Shown here: positions 49,103 to 61,801 of the stretch, piece after piece
Layout: each line of letters begins with the position of its first letter
How positions within the stretch are numbered: position 1 is the first letter of the stretch
Translations under genes and position numbers: made by a program
Origin: Syncephalis fuscata S228
Lineage: Eukaryota > Fungi > Zoopagomycota
DNA length: 64,000 nucleotides
NCBI GenBank assembly: GCA_025786725.1
Contig: JAHLTZ010000022.1
Span: 408,435 to 472,434, forward strand
Reading direction: 5' to 3'
Notes under the pieces: model-generated
Told to the model about the DNA's origin: nothing
The model's database searches: none
The model's input: the letters and a program-made list of their open reading frames with translations, nothing else

Positions 49103-51320
49103 ATTAGCTATGCTAGTTTCGTTAAAATGCTACAATAGGTAGCGAAGACTTAGGGATAATGCAATGGATAATAAAGGGTATCCATTAGACTTGAGAACAA
49201 AGAATTTATACAGTTCCTCCACATCAATTCAATTTCATCTGATATTTCTGGATTTCCTTTTTTGGATGTGATGAATAAGCATTTAGCCGGATAAAGCACT
49301 GAGCACAATGTATCACTATGACTCGGCTCCGTTTAGAATCACGAGTTGCATCGGCATTCCCGCTTATAAGTTTATCCCACGCTATTCTATTTCTGTAACA
49401 GGTTGAAGGGGATAAAAAAACAAATCAACTCGGATATTCACGGAACTTGAAATTAACAGGACTGGTTTGTTTCGTTTTTTTGGTACATCTGCACGACTGC
49501 AATAAATTAATATTGGTTTACTCGAGTTTTTTTGCTATTCAAAGCGAAAGCCATTGAAATCATATCGTGACAATACTTTATTGATGGCATAATTGTAGTA
49601 TTTTTGTTCGAAAACCGTACTGCTTAAGTCCTTACTGCCTTTAGCACAAAAATAAAGCATGAAACAGCTACAATCGAAAAATAAGGTGGATTAGGACATA
49701 TTTCCACAGATTCAAAATTGTAACGTAGGATATAGATAAAAACATAATGCTTACAGCAATCTAACTAAATAAAGATTAAAAAAGGCAAGCTCTTTAGCTA
49801 TAAATAAACACTTTATAGTATATCAATGCTTGTAACACTTATAGTGGACCTATTGCACTAAAATTGTATTTTCGCTTGAATGGTAAATATAATTGAACCG
49901 ATGTTAATGTTTAGTATGGTAGCGAGCATTTGTACTACTACAATTGTCTCAAAAAATACACACTAAATTGTGTAAGCATCAATTTCTCGTTCATTGTCAC
50001 TTTATCCACTTACCAATGGTATATGTTATATAGTTTTGCATGGCAGTGACAGCAATGGAAGTGCATATTGATTGAATAAAATTTACATAGTGATAAAGCG
50101 CAATTAATGCCCCAAAGCCAATAATGTAAAAACCAATGCCGCCCATAGACTGGGCTGTAGTCAGCGTTTATGTAAATGCATGTGTCAGTATAATGAATGT
50201 ATATACATGTAAAGTTTGATATTTTTTAAGACCTACTGTTGCAAATCATCAGGCTAATACCTTGTTTTTTATAAAAAATTACAATTATTGACGCACCTAC
50301 CGTAAAGCCCACTATTACAAGTACAACCAGTGATTTTTTAAGCTTGGAAATACGTAAAACTTTTGAACTTAAAGTTGGAATAGTGAGCAATTGGAAAAAT
50401 TCAACCTTATTGTTTAATAATACACCAGATAGTCATCATAATATTAGACCAGTGAATATTTATATGAATTATATTTAAACTTATATCTTATATCACGTAT
50501 GCTTAAATTTTAGACTAAATAATAAATTATGGTTGTATTAACTTTTTAAAATTCATAGTAATTACAGCAATGTTTTATGATTAATAATAGTAACAATGTA
50601 ATTCCTCATACCGGCCACAAATGTAATAATATGGAATTAAATTATTTTATTTATATTGTTACTGTTCTGATATTCCAGACAGGGTCTTGTGCAAGTGTGA
50701 CCAAGAGATATACCATGCGATCGATTACAAGAATAATATATTTATCGAATATTAGTACCGATTACTAGTAACAAATGCCTATTACGACAATATGACGAGT
50801 AGCTACTTGTTAGTTGTAGGCATGTGAGCAGTTACCTGAACTAATATGCTGCACTAATGATGAAATACTACAAGGCATTCCAGTTTTATTATTAGTTATG
50901 TTTACTATATAATGATAGCTTTATTCAATATCAATAAAGAATAATCAAGTTTCTAGTCCAATATTATTTCTACTTAGTGTCATACAAGTTATTCAGTTTA
51001 TTATAGTTAAACTGTGGTAATTAATGACCAATAAGGAATAATTTTATTATAAAAGCAATACAGCCAAACAACACATTGTATTCTGAGCGTTAAGGTAAGC
51101 GTTAATAAGCATCAGAAATTAGCGTTACAGAATAGCAACAGGATAAGATGTTGTTTGGTCATCTAAGTTGCGATTTCTAAAATTAGAAGCGTAATAACAT
51201 TAATAAATAATAACAAAGTTTAAGAAAGTAAATGTTTTCAAGTACTAGCCTATAAACAAATACTTAGTATTATTTGTAAATGAAATTAGCTAATATGATC
51301 TAAACGCAAAATATTTATAA

Positions 51321-51820
51321 TATATTTTTGAATAAACAGTTAATTTTGTTGTCAATATATATAATTACAATATCTGCATTTAACGTTGATATATTCATAC
51401 TATCTTATGCTTATAACTAATACAATATAATTGCAAATGTCTTTAGTTAGTTTGACTAATAATTAATAATTATTGGATGCAAATAGAACATGAGTATAGA
51501 TATAACAATTCGATTGTATATAGCTAAAATGAACCACAAGTTTATTACTATAAGCTTGCACAGTTGAATAGAAACAACTAAATGCAAGCCTGTTGATAAA
51601 ATAATATCCCATTGATTAAAGACTGGATAAACCGGAGCATTGGCCAAAACTTGATATATAGATGACTGAATGGCGTAGTTGTCAAATAGTCTTGCATTTC
51701 ACCGAATATATACCTAAAGTGTGTTAAAATAGTGGTTTGATTGCACTACCAATGCTGATGTCTTGAAAGCACCTATTGTCCTGTGTTTACGAATAAAAAT
51801 ATTACATGTCCTATAATTAA
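51321..51820. repeat. ~500-bp near-identical duplicate (copy 1), the 3' end/UTR of micro-exon gene A
   Basis: Matches 58569-59070 almost base for base. Confidence 0.95.
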
Positions 51821-54800
51821 TTTTATAGGTTAACAATATATAATACTACTTACATTCTATTAATATTAAACAATTAATAAGTACATTTCATGGTATAAAA
51901 TTAGCACATAATCAGTTAATACAAAATACAACTTACTTTCTATTATATTAAGTTGTTGATATACAGAATACATAGTATATAATTAGTCTATGCTCTATTG
52001 ATATACAATGCTACTTACCGCCTATTAGTATTAAGTTGTTAATACACATGGTGTATAGCATGTGGTTAGTGCATATTCAGTTAATATACATTACCACTTA
52101 CAATCTATTGATAATAAGTCATTAGTACAATCAACAAATAGTAGGCGATTAGTTTATAGTTAATTAATATACAATACAACTCACAAGCTATTAAGATTAA
52201 GTTATTGGTACGCACAGCACATGGTACATAATTAGCGCATAATCATGTAGTATACAATACGACTTACTTTCTATTATATTAGGTTATTGATACACACAGT
52301 ACATGAATATAATCAGCGAGTAATTAGTTAATATACAATATAACTTACTGCCTATTGGTATTAGATTATTGGTACACATGGTGTATAACACGTGGTTAGT
52401 GCGTAATCAATTAATACACAATACAACTTACACTCTATTATATTAATTAATTGGCACAATTAGTAAATAGCATCTGATTAATGTATAGCCAATTAATATA
52501 TAATGCCACTTACTTTCTATTATATCGAGTCATTGGTACATACAGTACACGGCACATAGTTAATGTATAATCAATTAATATACAACGTTACTTGCCCACT
52601 ATATATTAAATCATTGATACACACAGTGCACGACACATAATTAATGAATAATCAGTTAAATACACAATACAACTTACTGCCTATTATGTTAAATTGTTAA
52701 TGTACGCAGTGCATAATATATGGTTAGTGTATAGTCAGTTAAAATACAATACAACTTACATTCTAATAATATCAAGTTGTTGGTACACAGATTACATAGA
52801 TATAATTAATGATTAATTATTTAATATATAGTATTACTTACCGCCTATTATATTAAGTCATTGATACACACAATGTACAATATAAAATTAAGATATAGTC
52901 AGTCAATATACAGTAAAACTTACTATCTATTAATATTAAGTTGTTCATACACACAGTACATGAGATATGATTAGCGTATAGTCAATTGATATACAGCACA
53001 ACTTACATGCTATTAATATTAATATATCGATACACAAAGTACGTGGCATATAGTTAATAAAAAGTTAGTTAATGTACAATACAACTTACTGCCTAGTATA
53101 TTAATTATTATATACACAGTACATGGTATATAATTAGTCTATGTTCTATTGATATACAATGCTACTTACAATCTATTATATTAAATTGTTAATATACACA
53201 GTACGTGGCATATAATTAGTGCATAGTAAGTTGATATAACATACAAATTACCAGCTATTAACATTAAATCATTGATACGCACAGTGCATGATATATAATT
53301 AGCACATAGTCAGTTAATATACAATATAACTTACTGCCTATTAGCATTAAGTCATTGGTGCACACAATACATGACATATACTTAGTGCATATTTAGTTAA
53401 TATACAATACCACTTACAAACTATTAATAAGTTATTGGTACAATCATTAAATAGTATGTGATTAATGTATAGTTAATTAATATACAATACCACTTACTTT
53501 CTATTGTGTTAAGTTGTTGGTGCATATAATACATAATGTATAATTAGTTTATAAGCCAGTAATATACGATGTTACTTACGGTCTATTATTATTATTAAGT
53601 TGTTAATGCATACAGTACATGGCATATAATTAGCGCAGTCAGTTAATATACAATACAACTTACGACCTATTAGTATTGTCATTGGTGCACACAATATATG
53701 ACATATAATTAGTACATATTTAGTTAATATACAATACCACTTACCATCTATTATATTAAGTCATTGGTACACAAAGTACATGACACATAAGTAGTACATA
53801 TTTAGTTAATATACAATATAACTTACTATCTATTAATAATTCATTAGTACAATCAACAAATAGTATGTGATTAGTGCATAGTTAGTTAATATACAACACA
53901 TCTTACCGCCTATTATATTGCGTCATTTATACACATAGTGCATGGCATATAATTAGTGCATAGTCAGTTAATATGCAATACCACTTGCCCCCTATTAATA
54001 TTGATTCATTGATACACATAGTACACGACATATAATTAGTGCATAGTCAGTTAATATACAATACCACTTGCCCCCTATTATATTAAGTTTTTGGTGCATA
54101 TAATATATAATGTATAATTAGTTTATAAGCCAGTAATATATGATGCTACTTACGGCCTATTATTATTAAGTTGTTAATGCACATAGTATATGGCACATAA
54201 TTAGCGCACATTCAGCTAACATACAATACCACTTACTAGCTATAATATTAAATTGTTGATGCGCACAACACATGGCATGTAATTAGCGCAGTCAGTTAAT
54301 ATGCAATACAACTTACGATCTATTATATTAAGCCATTGGTACGCGCAGTACATGGCGCATAATTAGTACATATTTAGTTAATATACAATATAACTTACTA
54401 TCTATAAAATTAAATTGTTCATACACATAGTACATGGCACATATTAGGACATATTTAGTTAATGTACAATACAACTTACTGCCTATTATATTAAATTATT
54501 AATATACACAGTACATGGTATATAATTAGTCTATGTTCTATTGATATACAATAGGACTTACAAGCTATTAATATTAGGTTGTTAATGCACACAGTACGTG
54601 ACATATAATTAGTGCATAGTAAGTTGATATAACATACAAATTACCAACTATTGATATTAAGTGTTAATGTACACAGTACATAGTATATAATTAGTTTATG
54701 TCCTATTGATATACAATAGAACTTACGACCTATTAGTATTAAGTCATTGGTGCACACAATACATGACATATAATTAACACATATTGAGTTAATGTACAAT

Positions 54801-55956
54801 ACCACTTACCACCTATTATATTAATTTTAATATACACAGTACATGGTATATAATTAGTCTATGTTCTATTGATATACAATAGGACTTACAAGCTATTAAT
54901 ATTAAGTTGTTAATGCACACGGTACATAACACATGATTAGTGTGTGGTCAGTTAATACAAAATTCCACATACAAACTATTGATATTAAGTGTTAATGTAC
55001 ACAGTACATGGTATATAATTAGTCTATGTCCTATTGATATACAATAGGACTTACAAGCTATTAGTATTAAGGTGTTAATACACATGGTGTATAGCATGTG
55101 ATTAGTGCATATTCAGTCAATATACAATATCGCTTACGGTCTATTATATTAAGTTGTTAATATACACAGTACATGGCATATAATTAGTGCATAGTCAGGT
55201 AATATACAATTTTACTTGCCCACTAATATATTATATTGTTGATACACACAACACAATATATAATTAGCGCATATTCAGTTAATATACAATACCACTTACT
55301 ATCTATGGAATTAAGTTGTTTATACACACAGTATATAGCATATAATTAGTATATAGCCGGTTGATATACAATACAACTTACTGCCTATTACATTAAATTG
55401 TTGCATACAGTACATGGTATATAATTAGTCTATGTTTTATTGATATACAATAAAACTTACAAACTATTAATATTAAATAATTGGTACAATCAATCAATAA
55501 CATCATCAATGTATGGCCAGTTAATATACAATACAACTTACAGCCTATTAATATTAAATAATTGATACAATTAGCAAATAGCATCGTTAATGTATAACCA
55601 ATTAATATGCGAATAACTTACGATCTATTAGTATTAAGTAATCGATACACACAGCACACGGCATATAATTAGTGTATAGTCGGTTGATATGCAATATAAC
55701 TTACAGCCTATTAATATTATTTATTAATGAATATAATATATAGTATATAATTAGCGAGTAATTAGTTGATACATAATATAACTTACGCTCTATTATAATC
55801 ATTAGTTAGCAATATTATTGGTAAGCAAATTCTATGGCATATTTATTGTTATTACAACATACCACGACGAACTAAGGCTGGCTTAGCATCCACCATGGCT
55901 GTACTGGCCACAAGCGCCACGACGATAGTGCAAATGACGGCAATAGAAAGCTTCAT
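51809..55956 (-). CDS. Micro-exon gene A: secreted Cys-rich peptide precursor (about 80 aa) built from a 94-nt leader exon, 49 three-nucleotide exons and a terminal exon
   Basis: Exon 1 (55956-55863) encodes MKLSIAVICTIVVALVASTAMVDAKPALVRR+G and is followed by gtatgt. Then 49 units of tag|NNN|gtaagt-like. The joined product is ERYRFCNMDPFSCGLACNNPSRGGDNGHQICTDCTYSECMEKCKTYCEK, then T+GA stop if the acceptor at 51811 or 51781 is used. Confidence 0.85.
51811..55862 (-). repeat. Tandem array of ~82-bp units (one ~79-nt intron plus one 3-nt exon), 49 micro-exons
   Basis: Plus-strand consensus ...TTAATATACAATACAACTTAC-NNN-CTATTATATTAAGTTGTT..ACACAGTACATGG.ATATAATTAG... recurs every 79-84 bp with no gap. 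Confidence 0.95.
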
Positions 55957-56084
55957 GGTGATATTGATTTGTTGAGACAAACAAATAAAAAAGATAGTAG
56001 AGTGTGGTTGGTATAGAGTGGGGAGTAGTGTGTGTTTAGAAAGAAGTAGAGTGTGATGATGATATCGCAGTTGGTTGTGTATAT

Positions 56085-56102
56085 TTTGTGAGCTATTTAT
56101 AC
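56085..56102 (-). promoter_or_regulatory. Putative TATA block of micro-exon gene A
   Basis: TATAAATAGCTCACAAAAT on the minus strand, about 140 bp upstream of the ATG. The block is conserved at the same position in paralog B (about 60626-60643, TTTAAATAGCTCACAAAAT). Confidence 0.45.
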
Positions 56103-56282
56103 TTATGATTATGCTGAGATGCTAGTATACTGTAGTATACGAAATATACTATTACTGTGTAGTATGAACCAATAAAACAATCCAAATAATGGTTTGAGGT
56201 GCACATGTACCAATAGATTCATGGTGTGACATCATGGTTTCCAGCCTTGAGTTTAACATACTTGGTCTTGATTTTAACCTGA

Positions 56283-56750
56283 CCGGTCTTTACTTCAAGC
56301 TGCTCGGCATTTACACAGATGACACAGCAATTTCAATGAGCAGCATGTATGCAATAGAAACATGTACGTCATTCTGTATTTTTTTGTTACACAGTTTAAC
56401 TATTTGATAAAAGCAAGATATTATTTGACTTTGTAAAAACGACAAAGGCGCCTTTGCTGTTGCTTCCACGAATAACTCGGCCCTCAATATCCGCATGCAT
56501 AAAAAATAACGCATAACCTACCCGGTCTTTATTCCAATCTACTAATCATTTGTACGAATGGCACAATAATGATAATAACTCAGTACATATGCGATAAAAA
56601 TAGACATATGAGTTTGTATTTTTGTTACACGGTCTAACTATTTGGTGAAAACAAGTATACTGTTTGGTTGTGTAAAAACGACAAAGACGCCTTTGCTGTT
56701 GCTTCCATTAAATAGCTCAGTCTTCAATATTTGCATGCGTACAAAATAGC
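56283..56750. repeat. Diverged tandem duplication of a ~240-bp unit upstream of gene A
   Basis: CCGGTCTTT at 56283 and 56522. GTAAAAACGACAAAG.CGCCTTTGCTGTTGCTTCCA at about 56433 and 56672. One homologous copy upstream of gene B (about 60800-61000). Confidence 0.8.
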
Positions 56751-58568
56751 ACACAGCGCTGACGCAAAAACAAGCTTAACATATCAAATTGGTATTTTAT
56801 ACAGCTTTTTACTACCCTAAAGCCAGTTATAATTTTAGATTATAAAGTGTGTTGATTGATGCATGTATACATTTCATTCGACACTATGCCCATTGTTATG
56901 GGGGTAATCATTGCTTTGAGTTCACAAATGTATCACATCCAAGCATATCATTCCACATATTGTGCAACTACCATCATTCAAATGGCGGCTAATCCAAATT
57001 ACCTGGAATCAACTATACAATAAGTACTGATTGTAGGGTGATGCATCACAGCATTTTGAGCAATGGAACATTCCAACAAGTCATTTTCGTCATCAGTTTT
57101 CAGTTGTAAACTAGATTGGATCGGCTAAACCACAAGCAATACAGTATGCAGACACTAGACTAGACACAAAAAAGTACTAACCAAGTACCAGCAATTTCAG
57201 GTGCATAATGACGGCGGGTTGCATATTAACTGGTAATCATCCAAGGCCTAAGTTCTATCCACCTTTCTGAAACCAATCCTGACAAGTTAAGCAAGATAGA
57301 ATGTAGAAAAACAAGCCAAAGCAGAAACCAATGGAAAAGCAATTAGCAGCTCAAAGGCTTACTGGTTTAGCTTATAGCAAGTCATTATCGCCATACCATG
57401 TTAGACTGAGTTTATTAACGATCCAACTATTGATGATGCAGCTAGAACAATAGCGCTAAACGAAAGTAACGCATGAAAACAAAGCATTGTACATAGCATT
57501 TAACAAAACTGCAAACTAAACACATGCTGTTATGCTTTGCATTGTATAAGGCGAGTACTTGAGGAGAGGGTGAACGAACGAAAAGAAATTAGACAATAGC
57601 AAATGATATTGTCAACAAATGTCTATTCATGAGGGCATTGACCAGTTAAAATTAGGATTGATATAGTTACATATCATAAGCAATGATTTCATGTTGTTTT
57701 AAGTTATTAAACAGGAAAAAAGGAAAAATTCATTTATTAGATCGAAATGTGTACTCAGAATCATTTATATTAGCCGTTTGTTACATAAAAGCATGTACAG
57801 CTAAAGCCAATAGTAAAGTAGTATTGACACCATTTTTATTATAAAATATATAGTTTATACTATGTGTAAATGCGTAGTAATCCAATATCAGATATTGTAC
57901 TAATCAAATATCAGTTTAATTCACTTGACAATAAAAATAACAGGATGTTGTTACGGTACCAGATTACGGTATTATGGTCACATAATTATCTACTATGCGA
58001 TTGATTCATGATATTCACCATGTAATCGAACAACATGCCAATGATAACATGTGAAAATTTACGAGTATACTAAACACTATTATTAACAATCATAAACAAA
58101 CAGCCATCCAAGGACATAACCAGTAAACACTTGTTATTTACTAACATATGAGCAATCATATGAACAAGGCTCAAATTCCATTAGCAATGGTGTTTACTAT
58201 AAAATACTAGCTTTATTGGAATTATAATAAACACATCAGCATATTTGGTTCTATATTATTTTCTCTACTTTAATTGAAAATGCTATTCGGCTATTAAAAG
58301 CTTAACTGTGGTAACCAATAATTAAAAGGAAAATTATCTTTGTTTATTTTATAATAGCATCAGGTTCATGTTATATTAATTCAAACAATTAATTAGTAGT
58401 CGTTGACGCTTAGGTGATAGAAGTAATTGTAAACAAGACGGTAGCCATTAAGTTGCTAGTTGTTACAATGTAATGCTAAGTTGTTAACAATCAACAATTA
58501 TTCTTATACCAACACCAGTACAGTATTATTTCATCATATGATAGTGATAGATTTGTTACTATCCATGG

Positions 58569-59070
58569 TATATTTTTGAATAAACACAGTCAACTTTATT
58601 GTCAATAGATAATTACAATATCTGCATTTAACGTTGATATATTCATATCATCCTATGCTTATAACTAATACAATATAATTGCAAATGTCTTTAGTTAGTT
58701 TGACTAATAATTAATAATTAATGGATGCAAATAGAACATGAGTATAGATATAACAATTCGATTGTATATAGCTAAAATGGAACCACAAGTTTATTACTAT
58801 AAGCTTGCACAGTTGAATAGAAACAACTAAATGCAAGCCTGTTGATAAAATAATAATCCCATTGATTAAAGACTGGATAAACCGGAGCATTGGCCAAAAC
58901 TTGATATATAGATGACTGAATGGCGTAGTTGTCAAATAGTCTTGCATTTCACCGAATATATACCTAAAGTGTGTTAAAATAGTGGTTTGATTGCACTACC
59001 AATGCTGATGTCTTGAAAGCAGCTATTGTCCTGTATTTACAAATAAAAATATTACATGTCCTATAATTAA
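58569..59070. repeat. ~500-bp near-identical duplicate (copy 2), the 3' end/UTR of micro-exon gene B
   Basis: Matches 51321-51820. Confidence 0.95.
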
Positions 59071-60498
59071 CGTATAAGCCATTAATATACAATAAAACTT
59101 ACTGCCTATTAATATTAATTTGCTTATACATAAATTCAATAGCAAGCGCTTAGTAAATGGTCAATGAATATAATGTGGCACTTACAGCCTATTAATATTA
59201 AAATGTTGATACATATTAAATAACATGTAATTAATGCATAATCAAGTCATATAAAATATCACTTACGAACTATTATATCAAGTTGTTGATACACACAGTG
59301 AATAACATGTAATCAGTGCATAGTCGGTTAGTATACAATGCTACTTACCCACTAATATATAAAGTTATTGATACACACAGTACATAGTATGTAATTAGTA
59401 AATGGCTAATTGGTGTATAATCCCACTTACTGACTATTATGTTAAATTATTGATACACATAGTATGCCACACATTTACTAAATAATCAGTTAATATACAA
59501 TACTACTTACGACCTATTGATGGTGAGTTATTGATACACAGTAAATAGTACGTAATTAGTACATAGCCAATTATTATGTAACCTCACTTACCGCCTATTA
59601 CATTAAGTTGTTGATGCACACAGTAAATAGCAAGCGATTAGCGGATTATTAATTAGTATGTAATATTACTTACCACCTAATATATTAAGTTGAAAATATT
59701 ACAGTAAACATCACACAATTAATAAGTTATTACTTTATACACAATATAGCTTACAACCTATTAATATTAAGTTATTAATGAATACAGTAAATAACATGCA
59801 GTTAGTGTATAGTCAATTATTATGCAATGCTATTTACCAGCTATTGATATTAAATCATTGATAGGCACAGTATACCGTATTCGATTAGTACATAGTTAGT
59901 GTGTGTGTAATATCACTTACGGGCTTTTTATATTAAATTATTGGTATACACAAGATATAGCATGTGATTAGGGAATAGTCAATCAATATACAACACCGCT
60001 TACGCTCTATTGATACAGAATTGCCGATACACGCAGTACATAGTATATAATTAGTATATAGTTAAGTACTATAGAATATCACCTACCAGCTATTAAATTA
60101 AGGCATTGATACACATAGTATATAGCATTTAATTAATAAGCACTTGCTTAATATATAATATCGCTTACTGGCTATTATATTAAATTATTGGTATACACAA
60201 TAAATAGTATATAATTAGTGAATATTCAATTAATATACAATACTACTTACGACCTATTAAGCCAAATTGTCGATACACGCAGTACATAGCATGTAATTAG
60301 TATATAGCAGGCTATTATAAAATGCTACTTGCCGTCTAACACCATAATCAGTTAAGCATAATATTAGTAAATATGATGTTATATTTATTGTAATTACAAC
60401 ATACCACGACGGGCTAGAATTGGATTAGCATCCACCATGGATATAGTGGATATAAAAGCCACAATAATGGTACAAACGACGGTAATAAAAAGCTTCAT
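59023..60498 (-). CDS. Micro-exon gene B: secreted peptide precursor from a 94-nt leader exon, 16 three-nucleotide exons and a terminal exon
   Basis: Exon 1 (60498-60405) encodes MKLFITVVCTIIVAFISTISMVDANPILARR+G and is followed by gtatgt. The 16 micro-exons give DGPTEPPGCGGLMVRC, then RQ* (acceptor 59031) or RHVIFLFVNTGQ* (acceptor 59061). Confidence 0.8.
59061..60404 (-). repeat. Tandem array of ~82-bp intron+3-nt-exon units, 16 micro-exons
   Basis: Same CTTAC-NNN-CTA periodicity (80-83 bp) as array A, with more diverged units. Confidence 0.93.
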
Positions 60499-61801
60499 GG
60501 CGATATTGATTTGTTAAAACAAACAAATAAAATAGGCAATAGAATGTAATTGGGATAGAGTAAATAGTAGTGGGGGTTTGGCAGAAAGTAGAGTATAATG
60601 ATAATACCACTGGTTAGTTGTGTGTATTTTGTGAGCTATTTAAATATGTGTTTACATTGAAGCATCAATATATATATATATGTTATGCCATTGACATGCA
60701 ATATGGACCAATAACAATGCATCTAAATAGTGACTTGAAATACAAGTATGCTAACACATTGATAGCATGCTGATATGCATTCGTTTTTGTTTCAATTTGC
60801 CCGCATCTACATAGTTAGCGTAGCAATATCAATAATTCAGTACACATGTGATAAAATCATGCACGTCAACCTGTATTTTCTTGTTATACAGTTGTCTATT
60901 TGGTGGAAATTAATGTGATGTTTTATAAAAACAACAATAACGCCTTTGCTATTGCTTTCACCGACTCAGTATTCAATATCTACACACATAACAGGCAGCA
61001 TGCAACACCAACATAACAACTAGTTTAATACATTAAACTGGTATTTTTATACAAGTATTTACTGCTATACATAAACTAATCGTAACCTGAATTATAAAAT
61101 ATACTTGTTGGTTTATATATGCATTCAATTTGGTATAACAGCTGCTTTTACAGAAATAGCCAATATACTGGACTGACAATGCACTATATTCAGGCGTATC
61201 ATGTCACCTGTGCGATTATCTTCATTCCAAATAACAGATCATCTAAATAATCTGAAAATAGACTGTATAATGAGTACTATTATACTATAATGCAGCATGG
61301 TATTTCCAACAATAGACCATTCCAACAAGTCTCGGCTGTTATCAATTTCTTGGCTGTAAAGTAGATTGCATCGGGTATACTACATGTAATACAATATACA
61401 AACACTAGACTAAATACACTAGATGATTCTAGTCAAATATCATCAACGTCGAGTGCATAATGGCAATGAATTGCACATCAGGCAGTAATTATCCAGTACC
61501 TAGTTAATGCCCAGCACTTTTGAAAAATGACTCTGACAACAAATCAATTTGTCTTTGGAAGAACAGAGTATAAACCAATGAAAAAACAGTTGACAGTACA
61601 AACTGATTGCTTTGGCTTTATAGCAAAGTTTATAAAAAAAGCAAGTCACTGTGACCATACTAAGTTAGATTGTATCTATTTGATATTTAACGGCTACTGA
61701 TGCAATTAAAAGACTGTTGTTTTATTTCATCTATACCTGCAAATGAACAATAAACTAATACTAAAGCTTTACAGCCAAAGTATCAACGCCAAAAGACATA
61801 A

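Follow-up and report, generated by a model that had tools for sequence, protein, structure and literature searches.

Gene A of the zoopagomycete Syncephalis fuscata S228, a mycoparasite (a parasite of fungi), lies on the minus strand of a 64,000-nt stretch of contig JAHLTZ010000022.1 (positions 408,435 to 472,434 of the contig; the whole stretch is called the window below, and positions refer to it). The gene consists of a signal-peptide exon, 49 units that each comprise a 3-nt exon and a 77-81-nt GT/GC-AG intron, and a terminal exon. We conclude, with a probability of about 0.7, that this array of microexons was reshaped by recombination-driven copying of units in frame, alongside a homogenization of the introns. 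At least two multi-unit copies (A13-A17/A30-A34 and A18-A21/A25-A28) and the spread of one intron type (after exons A10, A12, A14, A16, and A33) are visible in gene A.

The initial annotation had proposed that recombination between homologous introns adds, deletes, or swaps single codons without a shift of the frame. This proposal was upheld in part: block copies with different residues and in-frame differences of whole units speak for it, whereas much of the pattern turned out to reflect intron homogenization. The further proposal of a massive intron gain by tandem duplication is well in line with the family as a whole, because the exon size of 3 nt and the single phase are constant over at least 2,198 units, with rare exons of 6 nt, which argues for such an origin. 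The simplest reading is that two processes acted together, namely true duplication and deletion of units and a concerted homogenization of the introns.

Structure, reading frame, and expression of gene A

The units were numbered A1-A49 in the 5' to 3' direction along the minus strand. The array is not interrupted, and 49 of 49 units have AG-NNN-GT/GC splice sites at a spacing of 79-84 nt. On the minus strand, each unit leads from an acceptor AG via three variable letters to a donor GTAAGT, which is replaced by GCAAGT in four units, every time after a triplet ending in G. Tandem Repeats Finder (TRF) reported a period of 82 bp with about 47 copies and 71% matches at positions 51835-55719, and a secondary period of 165 bp. 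The entropies of the single positions were calculated for 694 units of the family, the family-wide statistics being based on 40 intervals with a total of 203 kb. The three exon letters reached 1.89-1.96 bits, the AG and the GTAAGT about 0, and an invariant zone includes about 14 nt upstream and 6 nt downstream of each exon. The motif ACTAAT, which matches the yeast-like branch-site consensus, is conserved in every array intron about 40 nt upstream of the acceptor and thus unusually distant from the 3' splice site. With this motif, the GTAAGT donor, and the TAG acceptor (usually as part of AATAG), each 79-nt intron is a complete and strong splicing unit.

The leader encoded by exon 1 was called signal-peptide-like by eye. 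In the phase of exon 1, each codon is composed of the last letter of one microexon and the first two letters of the next. Read in this phase, the 49 triplets of gene A encode an open peptide of 49 residues, including 8 cysteines, and a TGA stop that spans the last junction. Because the codons straddle the junctions, a triplet that is moved changes two adjacent codons, and its meaning is set by its left neighbor. Copying or loss of a unit stays in frame because every unit adds exactly 3 nt to the mRNA. Analysis of 46 non-redundant array segments revealed 1 stop in 624 codons and 105 cysteines for the phase-1 frame, compared with 56 stops for the other shifted frame. Phase 0, in which each triplet would be a codon, was rejected because exon 1 ends in phase 1 and because 6 of 670 triplets are stops, with TGA and TAG present in other arrays. 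Stop triplets are thus rare even in this phase, which is not the reading frame. The scarcity is probably due to a splicing constraint, as a TAA, TGA, or TAG directly behind the acceptor AG would give rise to donor or acceptor sites that compete with the proper ones.

Only one public run that contains this stretch was found (X1). It consists of assembled contigs, and its RNA label was a guess, while its behavior was RNA-like. The summed contig depth, in which paralogs that are at least 90% alike are included, was about 350,000 for exon 1, about 99,000 for the 3' exon (51622-51782), and 0-110 for the introns. In one X1 record, which had no mismatches, the 79-nt intron at 55708-55786 (between A1 and A2) was removed exactly, and the neighboring introns were still present. 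A second record joins A41-A45; its aligned flanks are separated by 11 letters, 10 of which agree with the prediction. It is about 2% diverged and probably stems from a twin copy of gene A. In many other records the leader exon is joined to the 3' exon with unaligned letters in between. Overall, the assembled contigs of this one run represent intermediates of incomplete splicing and joints that are found across the family.

The array units are true exon-intron units. The gene A stretch is the middle of a transcribed and spliced gene, in which a homologous intron of about 79 nt breaks every codon of a mature, secreted peptide with eight cysteines. The peptide is probably an effector or a toxin of the mycoparasite. 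Judged by the depths at 55808-56100 and 51622-51782, the transcripts of the microexon family rank with the most abundant ones in the X1 sample. The possibility that the introns are themselves RNA products was also considered and rejected, because Rfam yielded no match at E<=0.1 across 51000-61000 and because folding of the array introns was not better than that of shuffled sequences (z-scores from -1.9 to +0.75).

Duplicated blocks and gain and loss of units

Several similarities within the array had been pointed out in the initial annotation, and all of them were recovered by alignment and string searches. The region 53090-53260, described as nearly identical to 54480-54650, is 90% identical to it over 174 columns. 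The rare string variant that both regions were said to share has exactly two plus-strand occurrences in the window, at 53226 and 54619, and it represents, on the coding strand, an intron with a GTAATT donor. Also the described exon difference is present: in the phase of exon 1, A32-A34 (CTG/ATT/GCA) yield T-D-C and A15-A17 (TTG/CTT/GCA) yield L-A-C, and the cysteine, which is formed from ..T|GC.., is retained in both copies of the block. The comparison of A15-A16 with A32-A33 gave an identity of 0.915, the top value of 1,035 two-unit comparisons and about five standard deviations above the mean (0.719, standard deviation 0.038). The match between 53515-53610 and 54090-54180 amounts to 91%, and the introns following A28 (ACC) and A21 (GCC) are 92% identical. 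The unit noted to recur at 54562, 54890, and 55055 is represented by a 19-mer at 54551, 54879, and 55044. This 19-mer brackets the CTT exons A16, A12, and A10, the letters of which are found at 54562-64, 54890-92, and 55055-57, respectively.

These values have to be compared with a background intron identity of 0.70 +/- 0.07 over 65 units. Clustering revealed that 18 of the 49 units of gene A fall into seven sister clusters at an identity of at least 0.90, and 25 of 49 are clustered at 0.85 or higher. In the unit-by-unit matrix of intron identities, off-diagonal runs of blocks appeared at offsets of 4, 7, and 17 units. At offset 17, the introns of A13-A17 and A30-A34 have identities of 91, 74, 92, 92, and 80%, and at offset 7, those of A18-A21 and A25-A28 have identities of 91, 74, 84, and 92%. 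At offset 4, the pairs A10/A14 and A12/A16 reach 96% and 97%, respectively, whereas the intervening units reach only 78-79%. The intron type involved in the latter case (type X) is also present after A33 and, more weakly, after A5 and A47, with identities of 89-97%.

Differences in unit number were analyzed by comparing gene copies within the one assembly of strain S228. Locus L018 differs from L010 by an 81-bp gap of one unit (GAA GAA versus AAA), which results in K-R-R versus K-K. Comparison of L055 with L056 revealed a gap of about 235 bp, with five units (CCA ATT CCA CTG ATT) versus two (GGG GCT). The extra block of L055 is a copy of its neighbors at an offset of five units; the introns are 96-100% identical, and the exon pairs are CCA/CTA, ATT/AAC, CCA/CCA, and CTG/CTG. 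The copies with these indels of one and about three units are only 2.6-3.7% diverged (intron mismatch, measured in different ways), and the indels are always in frame. In addition, other arrays contain runs of identical triplets, i.e. ACA four times, GCG three times, and CAA-ACC repeats. Gain and loss of units is thus a regular, frame-preserving mode of change in this family. In a direct gene pair at a distance of 19.4 kb (C2:226707-228510 and C2:245940-247996), the distance between corresponding units changes by about 80 and about 160 bp along the arrays, an indication that units were gained or lost after duplication of the gene. An inverted pair of whole microexon genes, about 59 kb apart, is found at C1:473791-476941 and C1:532780-535933.

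Gene A also has a twin, which is split over contig ends (C339:1-2251, C177:10110-12853, and C283:202-2536). The introns of the two genes are 0.5-3.4% diverged, and their exons differ by GTG/GCG, GCG/GTG, and ATA/ATG. Orthologous introns pair best and the A10-A16 structure is common to both genes; therefore, the blocks of gene A predate the split from its twin, and conversion has apparently not occurred there since. C283 is an indel-ridden duplicate of C177, and the assembly breaks inside arrays, so the lengths of assembled arrays have to be treated with care.

Exon change, intron homogenization, and alternative explanations

In the offset-17 blocks, 6 of 15 exon letters are mismatched, whereas random exon pairs have 0.72 mismatches per letter (P=0.01), and it follows that the exons were copied along with the introns and changed later. 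For the 14 intron pairs of gene A with an identity of at least 90%, adjacent exon letters differ in 36 of 84 cases (43%), whereas the introns themselves differ by 7.3% (odds ratio 9.5, P=5e-17). In these pairs, the upstream exon differs at 31% of the letters and the downstream exon at 55%, the intron being tied more closely to the exon upstream of it. In phase 1, the wobble position is the middle exon letter, and by a hand count this letter is different in only one of the 14 pairs of upstream exons. A half-intron test with gene A yielded exon mismatches of 0.50, 0.08, and 0.33 at positions 1, 2, and 3 (n=12). This conservation of the wobble position would fit the prediction for duplication followed by selection for amino-acid change.

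Several results weigh against unit copying as the cause of these patterns. The wobble result of gene A is derived from few and non-independent pairs, with one intron type being dominant. The expectation that exon letters diverge faster than introns, which had been put forward in the initial annotation, applies to the sister units of gene A, but not to near-identical gene copies: for orthologous units in eleven such copy pairs, 8 of 372 exon letters (2.2%) differ versus 174 of 9424 letters in the intron flanks (1.85%). A general hypermutation of exons was rejected on this basis. Genome-wide, within-array half-introns that are at least 94% identical are accompanied by exon mismatches of 0.62, 0.51, and 0.65, compared with random values of 0.72, 0.72, and 0.77, and this includes the wobble position. 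Of 81 exons that are crossed by a tract of similarity, 59 are nevertheless different. Furthermore, the blocks are mosaics, as the introns of A14/A31 and A19/A26 are unmatched within blocks that are otherwise similar, and nucleotide alignments of the blocks alternate between near-identical stretches and stretches at background level. Because of this mosaic structure, a simple duplication is not the whole history. Unit-number differences between contigs could in part be long-read assembly errors in repeats, and no full-length mature mRNA of gene A was seen among the X1 contigs.

Many of these results would be expected if the array were old, its codons stable under purifying selection, and its introns homogenized by short conversion tracts, with no codon added, deleted, or swapped in 53090-54650. 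That explanation is favored by the near-random exons between near-identical half-introns, by the mosaic blocks, and by the lack of exon acceleration between near-identical copies. The similarity tracts are indeed short, and they end within introns as often as at exons (124 versus 139; the ends were scored on informative positions, since the conserved 5' half of the intron confounds them). The view that introns are transferred as whole units was given up, as the tract ends are not concentrated at exons, and the invariant zone around the exons would mask tract ends. The arrays on C13, C223, and C339 contain introns that are 85-100% identical around different exons. Because near-identical half-introns flank near-random exons, much of the "same intron, different exon" pattern represents homogenization around old exons, and not a rewriting of codons that were newly duplicated. 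Similar introns are thus not always the mark of duplicated codons, because introns are homogenized around exons that are not recently related. Homogenization as the sole process is opposed by the block exons of gene A, which are more alike than random exons and have a conserved wobble position. Inside continuous similarity, the exon is identical in 22 of 81 cases, versus about 3% (112 of 3,581) of exon pairs with dissimilar flanking introns. When both 38-nt flanks are at least 94% identical, the exons differ by 0, 1, 2, and 3 letters in 11, 6, 14, and 6 cases, i.e. the distribution is bimodal and not graded. Whole-unit indels and runs of identical triplets exist, and the strict 3-nt exons in a single phase require duplication of units at the origin of the array. 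Taken together, we regard it as unlikely that homogenization alone produced the array.

Two further explanations would leave the peptide unchanged or would deny that it exists. Mobile, introner-like introns could have been inserted, one copy after another, into an intronless peptide gene, so that the peptide never changed. The presence of thousands of homologous introns in one genome and of near-identical introns beside unrelated exons would agree with such insertions, and the few 6-nt exons could be pairs of codons that were not split. However, random insertion would also yield exons of 1, 2, 4, and 5 nt, whereas all introns are in phase 1 and the exons have 3 nt, or rarely 6 nt. Furthermore, among the matches listed, the inspected introns are in tandem behind one conserved leader exon and not scattered in other genes, whole-unit indels carry their exon with them, and inspection by eye, without a repeat search, revealed neither terminal repeats nor target duplications of the introns. 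Serial insertion therefore seems very improbable. The array might also be a non-coding satellite with splice-like motifs, or its blocks might be misassembled, and it is true that TRF reports a plain 82-bp tandem repeat, that the motif also matches several metagenome sequences that are genuine satellites, their triplets being identical, and that the assembly contains duplicate contigs of poor quality. But RNA-like contigs are spliced exactly at the predicted sites, the depth of the flanking exons is thousands-fold above that of the introns, the frame statistics and the cysteine content fit a coding sequence, and the exon letters vary with an entropy of 1.9 bits, compared with about 0 for the splice sites. 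Copies of a block differ by 8-10% and hence are not collapsed or duplicated reads, and an intron-encoded RNA product is unsupported, with no Rfam family and folding as in shuffled sequences. A satellite or an assembly artifact can hardly account for the array.

For the preferred combination of unit copying and intron homogenization, the following course of events can be envisaged. The array would behave as an 82-bp minisatellite at the DNA level, and out-of-register homologous recombination, slippage, or gene conversion between look-alike introns would lead to units or blocks being copied, deleted, or overwritten. Exons that were copied along would then be altered mainly at letters that change an amino acid. 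The same recombination would also homogenize introns around exons that are not recently related. Thus the exons would be held or diversified by selection while the introns are homogenized, and it would be the residues between the cysteines that are selected. The recombination may proceed by unequal crossover or by conversion, and the array may possibly serve as an adaptive "engine" of peptide diversification.

The microexon family, comparison with known systems, and further arrays

The coordinates of the features are compiled in Table 1.

Table 1. Features of gene A and its surroundings (positions in the window), sites of the inserted element, and selected metagenome arrays
Feature	Position	Strand	Description
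Gene A exon 1	55863..55956	-	ATG, signal peptide, propeptide ending R-R, first letter of following codon; phase 1 donor, then GTATGT
Microexon array, 49 units	51854..55789	-	3-nt exon + 77-81-nt GT-AG intron (GC-AG in 4); final intron 43 nt
Terminal exon start	51809..51810	-	2 letters + last letter of A49 = TGA stop; 3' untranslated region runs on to lower coordinates
Block A13-A17	54402..54812	-	GTG GTC TTG CTT GCA; C-G-L-A-C; includes 54480-54650
Block A30-A34	53010..53420	-	TTT GCA CTG ATT GCA; I-C-T-D-C; includes 53090-53260
Block A18-A21	54075..54401	-	ATA ATC CTA GCC; includes 54090-54180
Block A25-A28	53501..53829	-	ATA ATG GTC ACC; partner of A18-A21
Zone A10-A16	54483..55057	-	intron type X after every second exon (A10, A12, A14, A16)
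Gene B, tandem paralog	59058..60497	-	similar leader exon, 16 microexon units, terminal exon same as in gene A (at 59060)
400-bp element sites	L033:678-1077, L033:15-416 (C177); L034; arrays on C135:37100-42923, C168, C238, C164, C35, C13
Example metagenome arrays	L072, L080, L121, L151, L159, L178

To quantify the family, the assembly (29.4 Mb, 371 contigs) was searched with the leader exon, with array DNA, and with a stringent pattern of the unit. Forty leader-exon homologs, out of 311 candidates, were scored, and their identities were 89-100%. Array DNA had at least 233 matches in the genome. The stringent unit pattern had 2,198 matches versus 0 for the reversed control, and as it recovers 68% of the parsed units, a rough extrapolation yields about 3,000 units. 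Among the first 100 of the 2,198 pattern matches and the matches of the other searches, all those inspected are located in tandem arrays with a spacing of about 80 bp, often behind a conserved leader exon. Exons of 6 nt (CTAAAT, CGGGAT) are found in C24:653630-656780, C2:597608-601106, and C61:2961-6459; such exons would be expected if one intron had been lost precisely, or if a split had yet to occur. Two units, at C135:37100-42923 and C318:35466-40633, have apparent exons of 1 or 2 nt, which may be homopolymer errors of the assembly or belong to dead copies.

Micro-exon genes (MEGs) of schistosomes and tapeworms have exons of about 6-36 nt and introns that are not tandem copies of each other. 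They resemble gene A in that they encode secreted products, with a signal peptide in a conventional first exon and the rest in very short exons with lengths that are multiples of 3. In both cases the gain, the loss, or any skipping of an exon would keep the frame, and the MEGs likewise are fast-evolving families of parasites. In contrast, the exons described here have 3 nt (rarely 6), the codons straddle the junctions, the introns belong to a tandem repeat family with an 82-bp period and at least 2,200 units, and the host is a fungus. A common descent with the MEG families of platyhelminths is unlikely because the organism is a zoopagomycete fungus.

At the DNA level, coding minisatellites such as the PRDM9 zinc-finger array (84-bp units) and the repeats of yeast adhesins, which evolve by unequal recombination or conversion, also resemble the array. 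They share with the array the head-to-tail units of near-constant length, the differences in unit number and order between close copies, and a homogenization of the units except for a few hypervariable letters that encode functional residues, like the contact codons of PRDM9. Tandem units with higher-order blocks, unit-number differences between recent copies, and a concerted mosaic evolution, all typical of minisatellites, were found here. However, in coding minisatellites the whole unit is coding and has a length that is a multiple of 3, while here 3 of 79-84 nt are exonic; recombination occurs between sequences that do not code, and its effects reach the protein codon by codon.

Exon shuffling and tandem exon duplication also use homologous introns as the substrate of recombination, and symmetric exons keep the frame. 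Here, the granularity is the single codon rather than the domain, and up to 49 successive introns are present in one small gene. In the classical model of intron gain, a new intron results when a segment bounded by AG...GT is duplicated, and the mRNA stays as it was; in the microexon family, by contrast, each additional unit adds 3 nt of mRNA, as exemplified by K-K versus K-R-R. The host genes of small nucleolar RNAs (snoRNAs; SNORD115/116 in SNHG14) also have dozens of tandem homologous introns and short exons in one transcript. But in these host genes it is the introns that yield the product, and the exons do not code for protein, whereas here there is neither an RNA family nor excess structure, the array introns do not accumulate in X1, and the exons keep a cysteine-rich open frame. 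A full-text literature search, which left many subscription papers outside its reach, found neither arrays of 3-nt exons nor this Syncephalis family described. Each of the known systems has traits in common with the array and differs from it in at least one trait by which the system is defined. The evolution of the array is a variation on known mechanisms, whereas the architecture of the host gene is, as far as we can tell, without precedent.

A rearrangement of coding sequence through recombination between introns was proposed long ago, and these findings place such exon shuffling at the level of single codons and in a gene family with very high expression. The tandem arrays of this 29-Mb genome, with at least 2,200 homologous introns (about 3,000 by extrapolation), show how introns can be gained in masses in nature by tandem duplication, and exons of 3 nt with up to 50 successive introns are a challenge for the spliceosome. 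Gene finders are likely to miss such genes, and a part of the secreted-peptide repertoire of the mycoparasite, and of the organisms with the metagenome arrays described below, is probably unannotated. The combination of invariant splice sites, near-maximally variable triplets, and homogenized introns also provides a system in which selection can be measured against a built-in neutral reference.

A non-autonomous element of 400 bp is inserted in array introns, always about 20 nt into the intron and antisense to the gene, with a target duplication of about 14 nt. The genome contains at least 42 copies, many of them 99-100% identical, and about half or more are located in known arrays. The end in gene sense is T-rich, and the far end looked tRNA-like by eye; ARAGORN and Rfam found no tRNA in the element. 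It is conceivable, and in our view quite doubtful, that the arrays are a targeted device for diversification, in which the conserved 5' part of the introns, the site of the repeated insertion of this young retroelement, is a preferred break site. Repair from a neighboring unit would then shuffle, add, and delete single-codon cassettes at rates far above those of point mutation, possibly with differences between the nuclei of one coenocytic mycelium. If true, such a device would give the mycoparasite a rapidly changing repertoire of secreted cysteine-rich peptides.

Metagenomes were searched with a generic pattern of three ATAG-NNN-GTAAGT sites at distances of 75-93 nt. It matched at least 120 contigs (L061-L180), with almost none expected by chance. 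Among the listed matches, some are plain satellites, and 57 are chains in which the flanks are conserved and the triplets vary. In an AT-rich group (GC content 14-19%), the three frames have 5 stops in 264, 38 in 242, and 3 in 242 codons, a pattern like that of the gene A family, and other chains use other phases. A blastn comparison of the array, leader, and 3' end of gene A with the 120 metagenome loci yielded no match, and the introns are unrelated. The microexon architecture is probably not confined to Syncephalis. If the break-site idea is true, these arrays with unrelated introns, presumably from soil and gut metagenomes, would make such gene building widespread and undescribed. In L072, an exon with a signal-peptide-like sequence is located directly upstream of the array.

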